64,000 nt of DNA, taken from contig JANHCV010000001.1 in assembly GCA_025594325.1 (NCBI GenBank), positions 1,550,001-1,614,000 on the forward strand. The letters run 5' to 3'. A program made the translations under genes and the position numbers. This DNA comes from Blastocladiella emersonii ATCC 22665. Taxonomy: Eukaryota > Fungi > Blastocladiomycota. The notes below the pieces were generated by a model. The model searched no databases, was not told the origin of the DNA, and saw only the letters and a program-made list of their open reading frames with translations. Positions within the stretch are counted from its first letter, which is position 1, and the number at the start of each line of letters is the position of its first letter. Shown here piece by piece: positions 500 to 63,143 of the stretch.

Positions 500-3400
500 A
501 TGTCGACGGCCGCACCGCCACTACCGCAACCACCACGATCGCCCGTCGCCGGCGCGCCCGCGGCGACCCCGTCGTCGTCGAGCAAGCGGCAGCGCGATCC
601 CGACGCGGGCGACGCGCATGGCGGAAAGGAGTCTTCGGCCAAGTACGCCTTAAGCCTGCGTAACCGCGATCAGGGATGAACCACGGCTAACCCGTCCCCG
701 ATCGACCGCGTCTAGACGCTCCAGCATCGTCGGTGCTCCGCGGCCCGATGCCGACCCGGAAACCGCGCCCGCACCGTCATCGCGCTCGCTCCGCGGCGCG
801 TCCTCGTCGCGCCTGAGCGTCGGTAAGTCGCCCGCGGCGCTGCGAGCCGCCGCACGCCGCCGGTCCACGCCCGTCAAGGCGGCTGCTGCATCGCCGGCGG
901 CGACGGGTGCAAACCGCATGTCCATGGCGTTCGTGTGGCCCTCGAGCCCCGCGAAACCGTCGCCGCTCGCCAGCGAGTCGGGATGGACCTGGCCCGCGGC
1001 GTTCCCGAGCTCGGCGACGGCGGCAGCAGCGCCCGCATCCTCGTCGGCGCCCGTCAACCCGTTGCCCGTGATCCCCGGGTTCCAGGTCGTCGATGGCGAC
1101 GCCGTCTCGTCGTCGGATGACGAGGACGACGACGACGACGACGACGACGACGAGGCGCTCGCCGCACCACCACTGGTCCCCGCGCCGCCCGAGATCCCCG
1201 CCGAGCTGCCGAGCGACCCCGCCACGCTCGAGGCCCTGTACCGCGCGCAGATGCTGAGCGAGAGCGCCGCCATCGAGGCGCAGGCGCAGCTGCGCAAGTT
1301 TGCGCGCGGCACCGCCGCCGCCACCGCGAAACCCGTCACGCCCGGCCGCCCGCGCGGCTGGCTGATGCGGCCGCGCAGCGGCATGCCCCCGCCGCCGGCG
1401 TCCGAGCCCGAGCACCCGAACGAGCCCGTCTCCGCAGCCGTCGACTCGGCGTACGCGTCGTCGGCCGACATGTCGCTTGAGAGCGCACTGCACCAGCTCG
1501 AGGTGTCGCAGCAGTCGATCCGCGGGCTGACGTCCATGGCGCGCGAGCTGCAGGCGCGCAACGCCGAGCTCGATGCCGCGCACCGCGCCGCCGCCGCCCA
1601 GCTCGTCGCCGCCGAGGCCGACCTCGAGACCATGCGCCGCCGCGCCACCCGCATGGCCGACGCCGAGAAGCGGCTCCGCGGCCACGTCGAGACCCTCGAG
1701 TCGCAGCTCCGCGACAACGACCTCCAGCTCACCTCGGCGTCGTCGGGCGCGCACCGACTGCATGGCGAAACCGCCAAGCTGCGCGCGACCAACGCCAAGC
1801 TGCTCGACGAGATCGAGGAGGCCCGCGCCAGTCTCGCCGCCGCCCAGGCATCGGCCGACGACGCGCGCAAGCACGCCGACGCCGAGGCCGCGTCGGTCCG
1901 CCGCGCGCTCGCCCTCGCGGTCGGCGAGCGCGACCAGTGCTGGCGCAAGGTCGACGAGCTGCGCCAGGAGAACGAGATGCTGCGCCGTAAACTGGCCAAA
2001 GCGACCGCCGCTGTCGCCGCCGCGAGCCAGCCCGCGCTGCCGCCAAGCGGAGGGCTCGGCGAGAAGCGCCGCCGCAACCGCCGCACGCGCATGTTCATCG
2101 AGCAGCAGCAGCAGCAGCAGCAGCAACAGCGCCAGCAGCAGCAGGACGATACCGGGTCGAACGGCAGCGACTCGGCGCCCGCGACGCCCGCCGAGGGGAA
2201 CACGAACCCGCTGCTCGTCGAGACGCTGCAGCTCGAGCTGCGCCAGGCCAAGGAGGCCGCTGCCGAGATGGAGAACGCCAACAAGGAGCTCGCCCAGGTC
2301 GTCGCCGAGCTCACGGACCAACGCGACGAGCTCGCCGAGCTCCTCGAGCAGTCGCGCGTCGCCATCGAGGAGCTCGAGTTCGAGACGGGCACCTCGGCCG
2401 CCGCCGCCCTCGACCGCGCGGGCAGCGCCGACCGGTTCAACGACACGTCGCTCTCGCTCTCGCTCGCCGCCGAGTTCATGCACCCCGCGGGCAAGGTCGA
2501 CTGCGCCACCCAGGTCTCGCCGCCCGCGTCGCCCGTCGTCGAGAGCAAGCGCGCTGACGTCGTGATCACGGCCGCGCCCGCGGTCATGACGGCGTTTGAC
2601 CCGCTCGACCTCACCGGTACCAGTCTCGACGACGTCGCTGCGGCCCAGCGTGCAGGGAAACCCCTCTCGCTCGCGCCCCCGCCGCGGCTCAAGGCCCGCC
2701 CGATCCTCCGCAAGTCGCCCTCCATGCTCAGCACCGTCACCATCCCGGCATCGGTCTCCGAGGAGCCGACGTCGCCGATCTCGTTCACGGGCGGCGGCGA
2801 GGGGATGATGCTCGGCAAGTCGCTCGGCGACGAGCTCGCGGCTGCGTTCCCCGCGCCGCCGGCTGAGGAGGAGGTTTCGCGCGCTTCGCTCGGTGACGAG
2901 CTCGATGCTACTGCAGTCTCGGTGCCCATAGTCGAGTCTGAAGGCGTGGTCGTGACCGGTCCGCTCGGCGACGAGCTCGCAGCAACACTCGCGACACCAC
3001 CCACCACCGACGACGCCGAGCCAGCACCCGCTGTCGACGAGGTTGAGCCTGCTGCTGTATCAATCTCGCCCTCGGCTGACGCTGTTCCTGTTGCCGAAGC
3101 GAGTCCTGCTCCGGTTGTTGATGCGCCCGCCGACAAGGCCACCACTCTGCCGTCACCACCACCAGTACCCCAGCAGCAGCAGGAGCAGCCCGCCGTGCGC
3201 CAGCTCCCCGCGTCGCCGGTCCTCTCGGCTGCCCCGGTCGGGCCCATCGACTACACCCTCCCCTTCTACCGCCCGCAGCAGCCGCTCGCACGGACCAAGT
3301 CGCCCGCGCGCTCGCTCAGCCTCCCCTCGCTGCGCGAGATGCGCCCCTCGTCCGTGTACCGCTCGTCGGGCGTGACGACCGACTCGGTCCTGCGCCGGCC

Positions 3401-57213: not shown

Positions 57214-57404
57214 TGTTTCCGCTTCCCTCACTCTTTTTGCACACCCACACCACACCACACCACACACCGAGAATTCATGTACATACACGCGTTACGGGGG
57301 GACGGGTCTCGACCTTTCGCTCGGTACCCTGCACCTAGACCCATCAGCCGCTCCATCACTATCCCACGAGTCCACGAGGTCAGGGAATGATATTTATAGT
57401 TACA

Positions 57405-60400
57405 CTACACTGCAGGCACCACGCCCGCGACCACGCGCGCGACGAGCCGCCCGATCCCGGCCACGTCGCACCCAACGACCACGACGCCCGCGACCGCAAG
57501 GTACACTACCGCCGACGCTCCGGCGAGCGCCACGACGGCCGCGCGCGGGACGGGCGGGACGCGTTCCGCGGCGTGCCCCTCGCCGCCATGCCGCTTCTTG
57601 TCGCCGCACGTCGGACACCCCCACAGGAGCATGTGGTACGTATGCCAGTGATCCCCTTGCGCGCGCATCGCCGCCGAGACGGGGACGACGAACAGCGCCG
57701 TGACGAGGTGGACACACGTCGCCGCGACGCCGCGCGCCACGCCCTCGACGAGCACCTTGGCCGCGGTCCCGCGCACCGCGCCGTGCACCAGCGCGTCGCG
57801 CACCGAGTGCGTCGCGGTCCACGTGCCCGCCCACCACGCGTCCGCGTCGCCCGGGCTGCCCGTCTCGCGCGAGCCCAGGGAGATAAGTTGGGTCAGCGTG
57901 CGCGACATGGCCGCGTACGTCTGCGCCGCGACCAGGACCGCGACGAGCGGTGCGTCGGCCGCGGTGCCGGCTGCCGCAGCGAGCGCCGCGGCGGCCGTCC
58001 AGCTGAGGAACACGGCGACCGCGCACAGGACGTGGACGACAGGTGCGGCGATCCGGCTCGCTCGCGGACACCGCAGCAGCGTCCCGACGATGAGGACCCA
58101 CGGGATCGCCGCGACGTGCGCGGCCATTGCGACGGGCCACGGGGCGAGCGCGGCGCCGACGACCGCCAGCGTCGCGCGCATCGGGACCGTCGCCGACAGC
58201 CGCCACACGAGGACCGCAAGGAGCAGCCACGCCGCGAGCACGGACCGGACGCGGACGGTCCAGGGGACGGCGAACGCGGTACGGTGGCCGGTCGCGAGGG
58301 ACCGCGCGGGGACGTGCGCGGTCGCGTACCACGCGCCGGGCCCGGTGCCGAACAGCCACGCGACCGTGTCCCAGTAGTCGCGGGCGACGCGGCGCGGGTC
58401 GAACATGTGCGGGTTGAACGCCATGGGCGCCACGACGAGGCTGAAGGCGATGGCAACGACGAAGGCCATGGGCGCGGCCGCGTCGGCGGGGAGCCGCGCC
58501 GCGGCCGCCACGACGAGCGTGCACAGGAACAGGCCGAGGTCCGTGGCGACGCCGTGGTAGGCCGCCCACCACTCGCGCATCGGCGTGCGCGCCGTGGCGA
58601 CGCGCCGCCCCGTCGCCGCGTACCGCGCGAGTTTCCCGCGCAGCCCCTGCACCAGCGTGTGCGCGTACACCTGGGCGACCATGGTCTCGAACACGGGCGC
58701 GAGCGAGACCACCTGGTGCACGAGGCGGCGGACCGCGGGGACCACGCCGTGCTCGGTCACGAGCTGCAGGAGGAACGGCAGGTACGACACAAAGTAGACG
58801 GTGAAGGCGAGCAGCGACTGGCGCAGCCACGCGACGAGGAGCGCGTGGTCGCGGCCGGCGACGGCCGGGCACATGCGCGAGGCGGGCGGGTCGCGCGCGC
58901 ACGCGGCGTCGGTCGGAAAGTACCACGCGAGCAGGCACGCGGCGAGCGCGAACACGCGGATCGCGACCATGGACAGCACGTTGTTGAGGTGGAACCCCGG
59001 GTGCGCGTAGTAGAAGGTCAGCAGCCAGTCGACGGGCAGCTGCGTCCCGAGGTAGTAGTGCTCGCGCGAAATCAGCTGCTCGGCCATGCCGCCGCCAATC
59101 TTGCCCGTGAACTGCAGGATCGACGCGAACCCGAGGTCGCGGCCCTTGCCGCACTGCACGTACTCGTGGTGCGCGATCCGACCCCCGCGCATCGTCGCCG
59201 TCATCCCCGCGTAGATGTCCTCGTTCAGGTGCAGACCGCGCTGCGCCTTGGCGATCCCGCCGCGCGTCGACATGAACACGAAGTGGAGGTAGTCGGGGTG
59301 GCCGTAGTGCTACGCGTTTGGGGGACGTGGCCGCGGTCAGCCTTGTCGGATCATGGCCATGGTCGCGAGAGAAAGAAAGACCGTACCATGCGCGACTGCA
59401 GCCGCGCCATGACGCGCTGCGTGAGCGTCCCAAACGTGTACTCCTTGCCAGCGGCAATGTTGCCGAGCAGGCCGACCGACTCGGAGAAGATGAACTCGCG
59501 GGCGCCGACGATGGCGAGCGGCGACTCGGTGGCGGCCGCGCTCGCCGCCGAGTGCCGCGCAAACTCGGCCAGCGCCGACCGCAGCTTGAGCGCCTCCTCG
59601 AGGTAGTGGTCCTGGTTCGCGTCCATGAGCTGCACCACTTCGCCGCGCTGGTAGATGAGCGCCGTGTTCTGGTTGTCCGACTTGCCGTCGCCCAAGATCG
59701 GCGGGCCCGGCAGCTCGATGCGGTACAGCTCGCGCACGTCGTCGCCCTCGTCGCCGTCGACGCCGGCCTTCTCGCCGAGCCCCTCGCCCAGCGGCGCGAA
59801 CGGGTCGTGGTGGCCAAGGAGCACCGAGTAGTACCGCGGCGGCGCGCTGCCGACCTCGGTCCCGCTGCCACCCGCCTGCACGTCAATGTACGCGATCCGC
59901 AGCCCGCGCTTCGTGTACGCGCGCGTGAGCACCGCGAGATCCGCGCGTTCCTCGGGCGACATGCGTGCGTACTGCTGCATGGCGACGACGAGCCCGAACT
60001 TGGTATCGACGAGCCGCTTGACGTCCTCGTCGACGGGCGGCGCCGCGTCTGGCCCGAGGTCGCCGCCGGCGGCGTGGTGGTCCGGGACCGCGGCGCGGAA
60101 CGCGCGGTGCGCTGCCTCGGGGGAGGCCTCGAGCGACGCCAGCAGCTCGAGCGCCTCGCGGTACTGCATGATCCCGGCCACGGTCCGGTACAGCGTCTGC
60201 GTCCGCGCACTCGCCCACAGACGCGTGCGCAGGACCGCCGCCGGGTGCGCCGCCTGGTACCCGAGCGTCCGGTGCACGCGCCCGCGCACGAGCGAGCCCG
60301 CGGAACGGCTGAGCGCGGCGGCGGCGGCGGGCGGGAGCCGCGTCAGTGGGGTGCGGCACGAGGCCGATGACGAGCCCGCACCGCCGCCGACACCGGTACT

Positions 60401-63143
60401 GGCGCCTGCGAGACTCGCGACGCCGTCCTCGTCCGCGAACAGGCCGGCACCGGCACCCACACCGCCGTCAGCGTCAGGCTCGGTCTCGGCCGCGAGGTGC
60501 GCGGCGGCGAGAAACTGGTCCCAGTCGTCGGGGTACAGCGCCTGGAGGTACTGGAGCTGCATGATGCCGCCCTCGCGCACGAGGTCGCGCACCGACAGCA
60601 GCACCGTCTCGGCGTAGTGCGGGACGAGGACCGTGAAGGCGGGCGTGGCGCGGACCGTCATGGGCGCCGGGATCGTGCGCATCGACAGCGACCGCGCAAA
60701 GAACCGCAGTCGCCGGTCCGCCTCCGAGTCCGGGAGCACCGCGCTGCGGTCCTCGTGCGTGATGAAGTAGTTGGGCGGGACGAGGACTGCGGCGGCGGGC
60801 GCGTCGGCGGTGGTGGCACCGCCGGGACCGGGCGCCACGACGGACGAAGACGACGACGAGCTCGGGAACGCGTCGTCGGGCGCGACGGTGATGGCGACGG
60901 CGCCGGCGGCGTGGACGCGGCGCGTGGTGCGGTACAGCATGGCGAGGTACTGTTCGCGCGACAGGTGGTAGCCGCGGTACAGCGAGTCGACGACGCGGTT
61001 CCACACAGTGGCGACGGCGGCCATGTCGGGGACGTGCACGGCGCCCGTGTCGAGGACCTTGGCGTGGATGCGGTCGGGCAGCCGCGAGAAGATCCCCTGC
61101 CACGGCCGGAACAGCGACGCGCCGTCGACCACCGACAGCGAGAACCCGACGAGCGACGTGGCGATCGTGTACCACAGGTACGTATCGAGGTGGAAGAAGA
61201 TGTACGCGAGCCCGACGAGCACCGCGGCCACGAACGGGCCGTACGCCTGGCACGCGAGGACCGACGCCACGGCGCCGAGCGGAGCACCCGTCGCCTTGGT
61301 CGCGGCGCGCGCTGCTGCGTCGTCAATGTGGCACGCGTTCTGCAGCACGATGCGCACCGGCTCGCCGAGCGGCAGGATCAGAAAGTAGTAGCCCGTGAGC
61401 AGCTTGAGCGCGAGGATCCCGATCCACAGCGCGCGCGCGAGCCGCCGGTCGCTCCACGACCGCGCGGGGAACTGCGCCGTGAACGACGGGTTGGCGTGGT
61501 TGAGCTGCGCGCCCGACACGAAAAAGACGGGCCGCGTCGCGAGCGCCCAGCACGTGCGCCACGACAGGTACACCTGGGCGAGCCCGAGCGCGTACCGGAG
61601 CAGGCCCGACGCCCCGAGCACGGCGCCGAGCCCGCGCTGGAGCGGGGTCAGCACGGGCGGGGCAACGAGGATCCCGAACAGCAGCGGGATGATCAGGTTG
61701 ACGAGGCCGAGCGCCGACACGAGCGTGGCCTTGCGGATGGCGCGGCTGATGGCAGTCGCCGACCACGGCAGGAACTTGAGCTCGAGGAACGCGACGAGGA
61801 ACTGCAGGCCCGCGGCGAACAGGCCGCCGAGGCCGAAGAGCGCGAGGCGCAGCTCACCGCGGCCGAGTGACGGCGCGAACTTGGAGAACACGGGCGGCGG
61901 GCCGCCCTTGTCGCCGGGGAAGTAGGCGTCGAGGACGACGGGCGGGAGCAGCGTGATGAAGGCGCCGAGGTGCAGCGTCCACACGCGGGCAAAGTTGACG
62001 AGGACGTGCTGGAAGGTGCGCTTCTCGAGGAACGTCTTGCACGCGTACTTTTCCCAGGGCACCTGTTGCGGGCGCGGAAGCGGAAGCGTGTCAGCTTGGT
62101 CGCGGTGAAGTGAGAGCGGCAGAGACGTACGTCGGCGAGTTGCGAGTACCAAGTGTGCGGGGCGCACTCGAGGAGCGCAACGTCCTTGCGCGTCTTTAGG
62201 CGCTGGGTGATTGAGGTTCGTGTCAGTTCTGCACCGACAACGCGCGCGCGCGAGGTGAGACAGGAAGCGTACACGTAGCCAGTCGCCGTTCTGAAAGCAC
62301 TCGTTCCAGTCGTCGTAGCCGACAATGTCCTCGTGGTCGCGGTGGCGCGCGCGCGTGGCCGGAGCCGCGCTGGTCGTCGCCGCGGCGCGCGGCTGGTCGC
62401 GGGCCTTGGGGTCCTTGAAGGACGCGTTGCGCAGGACGAGGTAGGTCGGGCGCACGACGTCGGCGAGAAAGGACGGGCGGCCGCCGGCGGCGTCGGGCGA
62501 GGGCGACGCGTCGCCGTGGAGCAGGTCGAGGAGCGCGGCGTGGAAGGTGAAGGCGAGGAACTCGGGGCAGAAGCGCAGGTTCGCGGCCTCGCCCCAGATC
62601 GACAGCCACAGCAGCACCTGGGCGAGCAGGCGCGTCGACGACTGGGTCTCGGGCTGCAGGCTGGCGAGGTGCGCCTCGGCGCGGGTAGTAGGCGTTAACG
62701 CGGGCGCTCCGTCGTCACCGGGTGGCGCAGCAGCAGCGGGCGCGGTGGGTGCGGAAGAGGCCTGCGAGAAGAGGGCCGCAGCAACGGACGGCGAGCGGAC
62801 CCACTGGGCGTAGTTGGCGTGCGGGCCCGAGACGTACTCGCGGTGCACGTCGGCGAGCGCGGCGGCGTCTGAAACCGCGCGCGAGCTGCGCGAGAGCAGG
62901 ATGCTCGTGATGAGGGCGACCTGATGGCAAGGAAGGTGAGTGATCTGTCGGCCACCACGCGATGATGCATGAGCGGCGAGCACGCACCTGGTTGGCGACG
63001 CTGGCGGGCTGGAAGCCGAAGCGCTGGACGAGGTAGGCGGCGAGGTCGCGCAGCTCTTCTCGCCAGTCCATGGCGGGCGTGGCCGAGCCCGTGTGGCCGC
63101 CAAGGCCGCTGTCGACGTCGTTGCGGGACGGCGGGGCCGTCAT
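57405..63143 (-). CDS. FKS1: 1,3-beta-glucan synthase catalytic subunit (FKS, GT48). Five exons.
   Basis: WGEAANLRFCPEFL, RRLRFFARSL, LWASARTQTLYRTV, PILGDGKSDNQN, DANQDHYLEE, GAREFIFS, HYGHPD, LHLNEDIYAG, EYVQCGKGRDLGF. Introns 62987-62921, two in ~62272-62064, and ~59387-59310. Confidence 0.96.

Follow-up and report, generated by a model that had tools for sequence, protein, structure and literature searches.

The 64,000-nucleotide window of Blastocladiella emersonii ATCC 22665 analyzed here encodes, on the minus strand at 57405-63143, a 1,3-beta-glucan synthase of the FKS/GT48 family whose wild-type sequence matches known echinocandin resistance substitutions at three neighboring positions. 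Our preferred reading, to which we give a probability of roughly two in three, has three joint parts. The altered stretch would be the outer end of transmembrane helix 5, i.e., hot spot 1 (HS1), of a single FKS-type enzyme; that enzyme would be active, with an older type of glucan exit gate; and echinocandins would most likely be bound poorly. Echinocandins are first-line antifungals, and work on the resistance hot spots of their target has been confined almost entirely to Dikarya. B. emersonii is a harmless aquatic saprobe, and what we describe is without clinical consequence.

The placement of the motif is consistent across methods. The minus strand of 61352-61405 translates to KLLTGYYFLILPLGEPVR, and 61358-61384 alone reads FLILPLGEP (residues 519-527 of the NCBI protein, P0121). 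A phmmer search against solved structures gave a gapless block over residues 616-651 of Saccharomyces cerevisiae Fks1, with F639-P647 opposite FLILPLGEP (whole-query E value 6e-103), flanked upstream by the conserved W625 and K632 and downstream by P647-x-R-I. The same HS1 columns were recovered in three MAFFT alignments (of 39, 157, and 48 sequences). The preliminary description of this DNA had aligned FLILPLGEP without gaps to F641-P649 of Candida albicans, and all four alignments concur. In C. albicans, HS1 comprises residues 641-649, and S645 is the commonest site of resistance (PMC2812698). Because FLILPLGEP aligns to these residues, B. emersonii has the equivalents of S645P, R647G, and D648E, as the same description proposed: Pro523 at yeast position 643 (645 in C. 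albicans), Gly525 at 645, and Glu526 at 646, where the carboxylate of D646 is retained one carbon further out. The column of E635, just ahead of HS1, holds Thr. In what follows, positions are those of S. cerevisiae Fks1 unless stated otherwise.

All three changes (S to P, R to G, and D to E) have a clinical record. S645P and R647G are found in clinical Candida isolates, and R631G, R665G, and D666E have been reported in clinical C. glabrata (PMC7557958). D632E, which like D666E is known from resistant C. glabrata, is associated with a caspofungin minimum inhibitory concentration (MIC) above 4 (PMC2812698), and the R-to-G change is micafungin specific in C. albicans but pan-echinocandin in Kluyveromyces marxianus (PMC13147539). 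This record bears out the earlier characterization of S645P as the classic clinical allele and of the R and D positions as linked to reduced susceptibility.

The gene appears to encode a functional glucan synthase and not to be a relic. PF02364 (Glucan_synthase) matches its two large exons with 352.9 and 331.7 bits (cut-off 37.2), jointly covering profile positions 4-702 of 819, and the N-terminal domains FKS1_dom1 (PF14288, 62.9 bits) and FKS1_dom2 (PF23605, 38.4 bits; cut-off 27 for each) are also present. Similarity to the solved S. cerevisiae Fks1/Fks2 structures (7XE4/7YUY) is co-linear, with E values of 6e-103 for the open reading frame (ORF) of exons 1-4 and 4e-82 for exon 5, and identity to yeast Fks1 is ~30% over the compared region. 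Nine Fks1 residues handle uridine diphosphate (UDP), the donor, and the glucan, namely, G1171, F1176, G1177, K1246, R1248, K1261, F1297, Y1424, and R1429 (PMC13249079). All nine are identical in P0121, and it is this identity that makes the enzyme look catalytically competent. The public name of the protein, "Callose synthase 5," hints at a plant affinity that we reject, as our tree places P0121 with the fungal FKS proteins, nearest to those of Allomyces.

These data also bear on the possibility of an artefact, in which the motif would be misaligned, the assembly or annotation wrong, or the gene decaying, with hot spots free to drift. The composition of the window gives some cause for such a concern: with a G+C content at third codon positions (GC3) of 0.94, wrong frames stay open, and the ORF of 1,250 amino acids (aa) that is called mechanically crosses two introns. 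Yet, besides the agreement of the alignments and the intact catalytic residues, the translation of the spliced model is identical to P0121, the gene is the sole PF02364 match in the whole genome (32.65 Mb, 21 contigs), the motif is kept in three genera of Blastocladiomycota, and the opposite-strand and off-frame ORFs across it have no Pfam match. We regard an artefact as very improbable.

Why these residues may matter can be read from the complex of caspofungin, glucan, and Fks1. In this structure the homotyrosine of the drug forms hydrogen bonds with D646 and K1336, and its contact with R645 is a cation-pi stacking interaction. The glucan exit gate has F639, S643, and R1357 as its ceiling; S643 is hydrogen bonded to R1357, and rotation of its backbone sets the positions of R645 and D646. 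The S643P enzyme, in purified form, withstands up to 200 ug/ml, and R645A, D646A, K1336A, and R1357H likewise confer resistance (all from PMC13249079).

B. emersonii differs at four positions of the drug groove: Pro643, Gly645, Glu646, and Gln1357. The last of these lies in the equivalent of hot spot 2 (HS2), AWLRQSLL (58809-58832, minus strand; P0121 residues 1344-1351, corresponding to D1353-L1360), which retains W1354 and R1356, has Gln1348 in place of the gate Arg R1357 (R1361 in C. albicans), and shows a one-residue deletion immediately afterward. The equivalent of hot spot 3 (HS3), LDTYLWYTIAT (61157-61189, minus strand; P0121 residues 584-594, corresponding to L690-N700), keeps D691, Y693, L694, and W695, with Thr for I697. 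F639, L694, W695, and P647 are all conserved. The extracellular loop between transmembrane helices 7 and 8 (TM7-TM8; 58833-58910, minus strand; P0121 residues ~1318-1343) measures ~9 residues between its conserved cysteines, compared with 8 in Allomyces and 16 in yeast Fks1. The yeast loop bears the drug contacts R1332 and K1336 (PMC13249079), and, because the loop is so much shorter, no residue of B. emersonii clearly corresponds to the K1336 contact.

We propose that the mouth of the exit channel in B. emersonii is an older version of the gate. F639, L694, and W695, which handle the glucan, are retained; the enzyme would be active, and its gate would work without the Ser643-Arg1357 pair, as it does in plants. 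The groove that Ser643, R645, D646, R1357, and the emerging glucan form in yeast would here be poorly formed, so that echinocandins would bind weakly. Insensitivity of the enzyme, which the preliminary description had put forward, can be considered a well-founded prediction, because of the contacts that R645 and D646 make with the drug and the resistance of the purified S643P enzyme (PMC13249079).

The differences could also be real and the enzyme still sensitive, if its pocket is built otherwise and the contact between drug and glucan, together with F639, L694, and W695, suffices. Caspofungin is held largely via the nascent glucan and makes few contacts with the protein itself, and many of the hot-spot residues are in contact with the glucan and not with the drug (PMC13249079). 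The conservation of F639, L694, W695, and P647, and the carboxylate preserved by Glu, agree with such a pocket. However, in B. emersonii the Pro is combined with the loss of both the cation-pi partner R645 and R1357, and the loop that bears K1336 in yeast has about half its length. We consider continued sensitivity unlikely, although it is the most serious competitor of weak binding through an older gate.

The closest experimental counterpart is the S643P mutant of S. cerevisiae Fks1 (PDB 7YUY), which shares with the B. emersonii enzyme the family, the helix, and a hot spot of the form FL-x-L-P-L-x-x-P. It is the best PDB match in phmmer (348.8 bits, versus 345.3 for the wild type), because its Pro matches the Pro of B. 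emersonii. Unlike in the mutant, this Pro is natural and lineage-wide, is joined by Gly645, Glu646, and Gln1357, and stands in a protein of ~30% identity. Resistance residues in wild-type FKS are also known from natural hot-spot polymorphisms such as P660A of the C. parapsilosis group, the F639Y type of Fusarium, and the Ala at P647 of a Mucorales paralog (PMC13147539, PMC2812698). Each of those is a single change in a member of Dikarya or Mucorales, at one end of HS1 (its first or its last residue), and for some of them enzyme assays or swaps provide support; the B. emersonii changes affect S643, R645, D646, and R1357 and are phylum-wide, with an effect predicted from sequence.

Two further comparisons place the motif in a broader context. 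Land-plant callose synthases (CalS/GSL, GT48) resemble the B. emersonii enzyme in I641, P643, L644, often E646, and P647, and in the retained D691 and W695; they have no E635. They differ from it in having Val and not Gly at R645 and Leu and not Phe at F639, and in an HS2 that cannot be aligned. The nearest relatives, at 36-44% identity, are the FKS proteins of Allomyces and Sorochytrium, which share the type of HS1 (FLLLPLGEP or FLLRPFGEP), the HS2 pattern W-x-R-Q/N, and the replacement of E635 by Thr. There are differences from these too: Allomyces has at least two FKS copies versus one in Blastocladiella, and the HS2 of Allomyces and Sorochytrium begins with Asp or Glu and not Ala.

We extended the alignment of FKS proteins to early-diverging fungi, the check suggested at the outset, and hot spot 1 stayed in place, with the Pro and Gly found in both blastoclads and chytrids. 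The four Allomyces sequences have HS1 FLLLPLGEP and Gln in the R1357 column, and Sorochytrium has FLLRPFGEP and Asn. Among the chytrids, Cladochytrium has FLVLPVGKP and Lys, and Blyttiomyces has FVVMPVGRP and Gln. P-x-G-E-P is therefore present in all six sequences of Blastocladiomycota, from three genera, and P-x-G in both chytrid sequences; across the seven-sequence zoosporic alignment, Pro in the S643 column, Gly in the R645 column, and Pro647 are invariant. The blastoclad motif is kept despite a whole-protein identity to Blastocladiella of only 36-51%. The picture is different in the 29 sequences of Zoopagomycota, Mucoromycota, and Dikarya, where we found Ser643 in 26, Lys or Arg at 645 in all 29, Asp646 in 26, and Arg1357 in 26 of 28. 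In 120 land-plant callose synthases, by comparison, Pro643 occurs in 113, Val645 in 112, and Pro647 in 119, Glu is the commonest residue at 646 (42 sequences), and HS2 is unalignable. The idea of three resistance-type substitutions within one motif holds at the level of the equivalences, but it does not describe changes acquired together: this is a lineage-wide state whose Pro is common to chytrids and plants.

A metagenome scan with a zoosporic HS1-HS3 profile returned 80 FKS loci and added no zoosporic sequences, as essentially all were of the Dikarya type (Ser643 in 77, Arg or Lys at 645 in 75, Asp646 in 72, and Pro647 in 80). Among 112 C-terminal fragments the R1357 column is nearly always Arg; Gln occurs in two, one of them with a blastoclad-like W-M-R-Q-S. 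Some of the metagenomic HS1 sequences are odd, with FLTSSFSSP in five loci (L054, L055, L076, L081, and L082; match near 3001-3375) and FLTLLLREP in two (L007 and L008).

Several other sequences deserve mention on their own account. In the Zoopagomycota, the FKS proteins of Syncephalis (P0153) and Thamnocephalis (P0154) have HS1 FLALSFKDA and FLALSFKDT, in which Ala or Thr replaces Pro647, the site of the natural C. parapsilosis polymorphism. A Mucorales HS1 differing from that of yeast by V641A, L644F, and P647A was pan-resistant in a yeast library, which points to Ala647 (PMC13147539). Within the Ser-type clade of land fungi, Pro occupies the Ser643 column in P0135 (Benniella), P0137 (Pleurotus djamor), and P0157, with the basic residue at 645 retained, and the same combination is found in the metagenomic locus L010:3001-3384. 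The two chytrid proteins, P0140 (Cladochytrium replicatum) and P0156 (Blyttiomyces sp. JEL0837), are full-length, and the presence of FKS within Chytridiomycota is patchy. Rhizoclosmatium and Batrachochytrium are reported to be without FKS, yet they respond to caspofungin (PMC7341943).

The history of the gate was traced on a tree of 48 sequences (LG+G4, quick search, rooted on plants), from which a protist sequence of the MMETSP set (P0158) was excluded, as its HS1 is not reliably alignable. The tree separates chytrids, blastoclads, and a clade with 100% support that comprises all 29 sequences of non-flagellated fungi, within which the gene tree tracks the species groups. The S643 column requires five changes on this tree. 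In one, Ser replaces Pro on the non-flagellated stem; three are nested returns to Pro (in Benniella, Pleurotus djamor, and the ascomycete-like P0157), and one is from Pro to Ala in a liverwort. The set of Ser, basic residue, and Arg has a single origin on the stem of the non-flagellated fungi. From plants, the only outgroup, and two chytrids, we infer that Pro is the ancestral state at 643. Since blastoclads, chytrids, and plants have Pro, and Zoopagomycota, Mucoromycota, and Dikarya have S-x-[RK]-D with the HS2 Arg, the sensitive-type pocket would be derived at the base of the non-flagellated fungi. The drug-sensitive pocket is thus probably the later state, and it probably arose in the ancestor of land fungi. 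The preliminary description had raised the question of whether the pocket is a later state, that of Dikarya; a later state agrees with our results, whereas an origin in Dikarya does not, as S-x-[RK]-D is already found in Zoopagomycota and Mucoromycota and maps to the fully supported stem.

The same tree is informative on whether Blastocladiomycota could have gained resistance-type residues by adaptation, under selection by echinocandin-like lipopeptides of neighboring fungi. All three altered positions coincide with clinically selected sites, and at least three reappearances of Pro within the sensitive-type clade indicate that the change from Ser to Pro is evolutionarily accessible. Nevertheless, the same Pro is present in both chytrids and in nearly all of the plant callose synthases, the same Gly is present in both chytrids, and a history in which Ser was gained once, on the terrestrial stem, is more parsimonious than one in which Pro was gained in parallel. 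Such an adaptation has, in our view, only a slim chance of being the explanation.

The reading of an older gate that binds echinocandins poorly should be taken with caution, since several points weigh against it. Taken alone, the R-to-G and D-to-E changes cause weak or drug-specific MIC shifts in Candida (PMC7557958, PMC13147539). At ~30% identity to yeast, the effects of single residues in yeast and Candida may not transfer. The retention of F639, L694, and W695 in a system where the drug is held largely through glucan goes in the same direction, and our search of the literature found no published echinocandin tests on Blastocladiella or Allomyces. As for the evolutionary part, the co-variation of S643 and R1357 amounts to 4 independent pairs only (p 0.5), a test without power. 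The sampling behind the polarity consists of two chytrid sequences and a single outgroup lineage, the plants. Finally, the zoosporic branches are long, the tree does not settle how chytrids, blastoclads, and the remaining sequences branch relative to one another, and the deviating composition of the blastoclad sequences calls for additional caution.

The gene model supporting these comparisons is as follows, all on the minus strand. The coding sequence, including the stop, has five exons and encodes 1818 aa. Exon 1 (62988-63143; 52 codons) starts with the ATG at 63143 and is followed by the intron 62921-62987. Exon 2 (62273-62920; 216 codons) encodes FKS1_dom1 and precedes the intron 62203-62272; exon 3 (62131-62202) has 24 codons, in a frame unlike that of the long ORF, and precedes the intron 62063-62130. 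Exon 4 (59387-62062; 892 codons) encodes the transmembrane region, which contains HS1 and HS3, as well as the first half of the GT48 catalytic domain. After the intron 59310-59386, exon 5 (57405-59309; 634 codons to 57408, plus the stop at 57405-57407) encodes the second half of the catalytic domain, the TM7-TM8 loop, HS2, and the C-terminal transmembrane bundle. All four introns are 67-77 nucleotides long and have GT..AG borders.

Two mechanically called ORFs on this locus were rejected. The ORF of 1,250 aa at 59351-63103 (minus strand) has no start Met and reads through the introns 62203-62272 and 62063-62130. Its frame also bypasses the frame-shifted 24-codon exon and includes a stretch of 75 aa that cannot be aligned to yeast Fks1. 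The ORF of 936 aa at 57400-60210 is an Arg-rich wrong frame. Mechanical ORFs are misleading in this window because its G+C content is ~70%; at the observed GC3, stops are so rare in this genome that the length of an ORF is of little informative value.

Part of this was known. The gene is already annotated in NCBI, and FKS homologues have been reported in Allomyces and Blastocladiella britannica (PMC7389562). Intrinsic reduced susceptibility is known to arise from natural hot-spot polymorphisms, and a library of orthologous hot spots has been screened in yeast (PMC13147539). Our literature search found no paper describing the hot spots of zoosporic fungi or comparing them with callose synthases, and nothing on echinocandin testing of plant callose synthase. 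The HS1 of B. emersonii would be a further natural hot-spot variant, and the modestly new point is that the pocket would date to the common stem of Zoopagomycota, Mucoromycota, and Dikarya, and not to Dikarya.

These results may have consequences for how echinocandin action is understood. Caspofungin effects in zoosporic fungi, such as those at 1-50 uM in the FKS-less Rhizoclosmatium (PMC7341943), should not be taken as FKS inhibition. More tentatively, and with somewhat less than even confidence, we suggest that the whole echinocandin groove (Ser643, a basic residue at 645, Asp646, and Arg1357) was one innovation of the exit gate on the non-flagellated stem, and that zoosporic fungi and plants retain an older gate of the Pro type, unable to hold the drug. 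If true, this would account for the action of the drugs on fungal enzymes and not on those of plants, and an intrinsically insensitive enzyme would be predicted in all blastoclads and chytrids that have FKS. A natural FKS with Pro643, Gly645, Glu646, and Gln1357 offers a ready comparator for an exit gate without the Ser643-Arg1357 hydrogen bond. The B. emersonii enzyme could serve as a natural experiment on the contacts that the drug truly requires, and would place the emergence of the drug-sensitive pocket on the land-fungal stem rather than in Dikarya.

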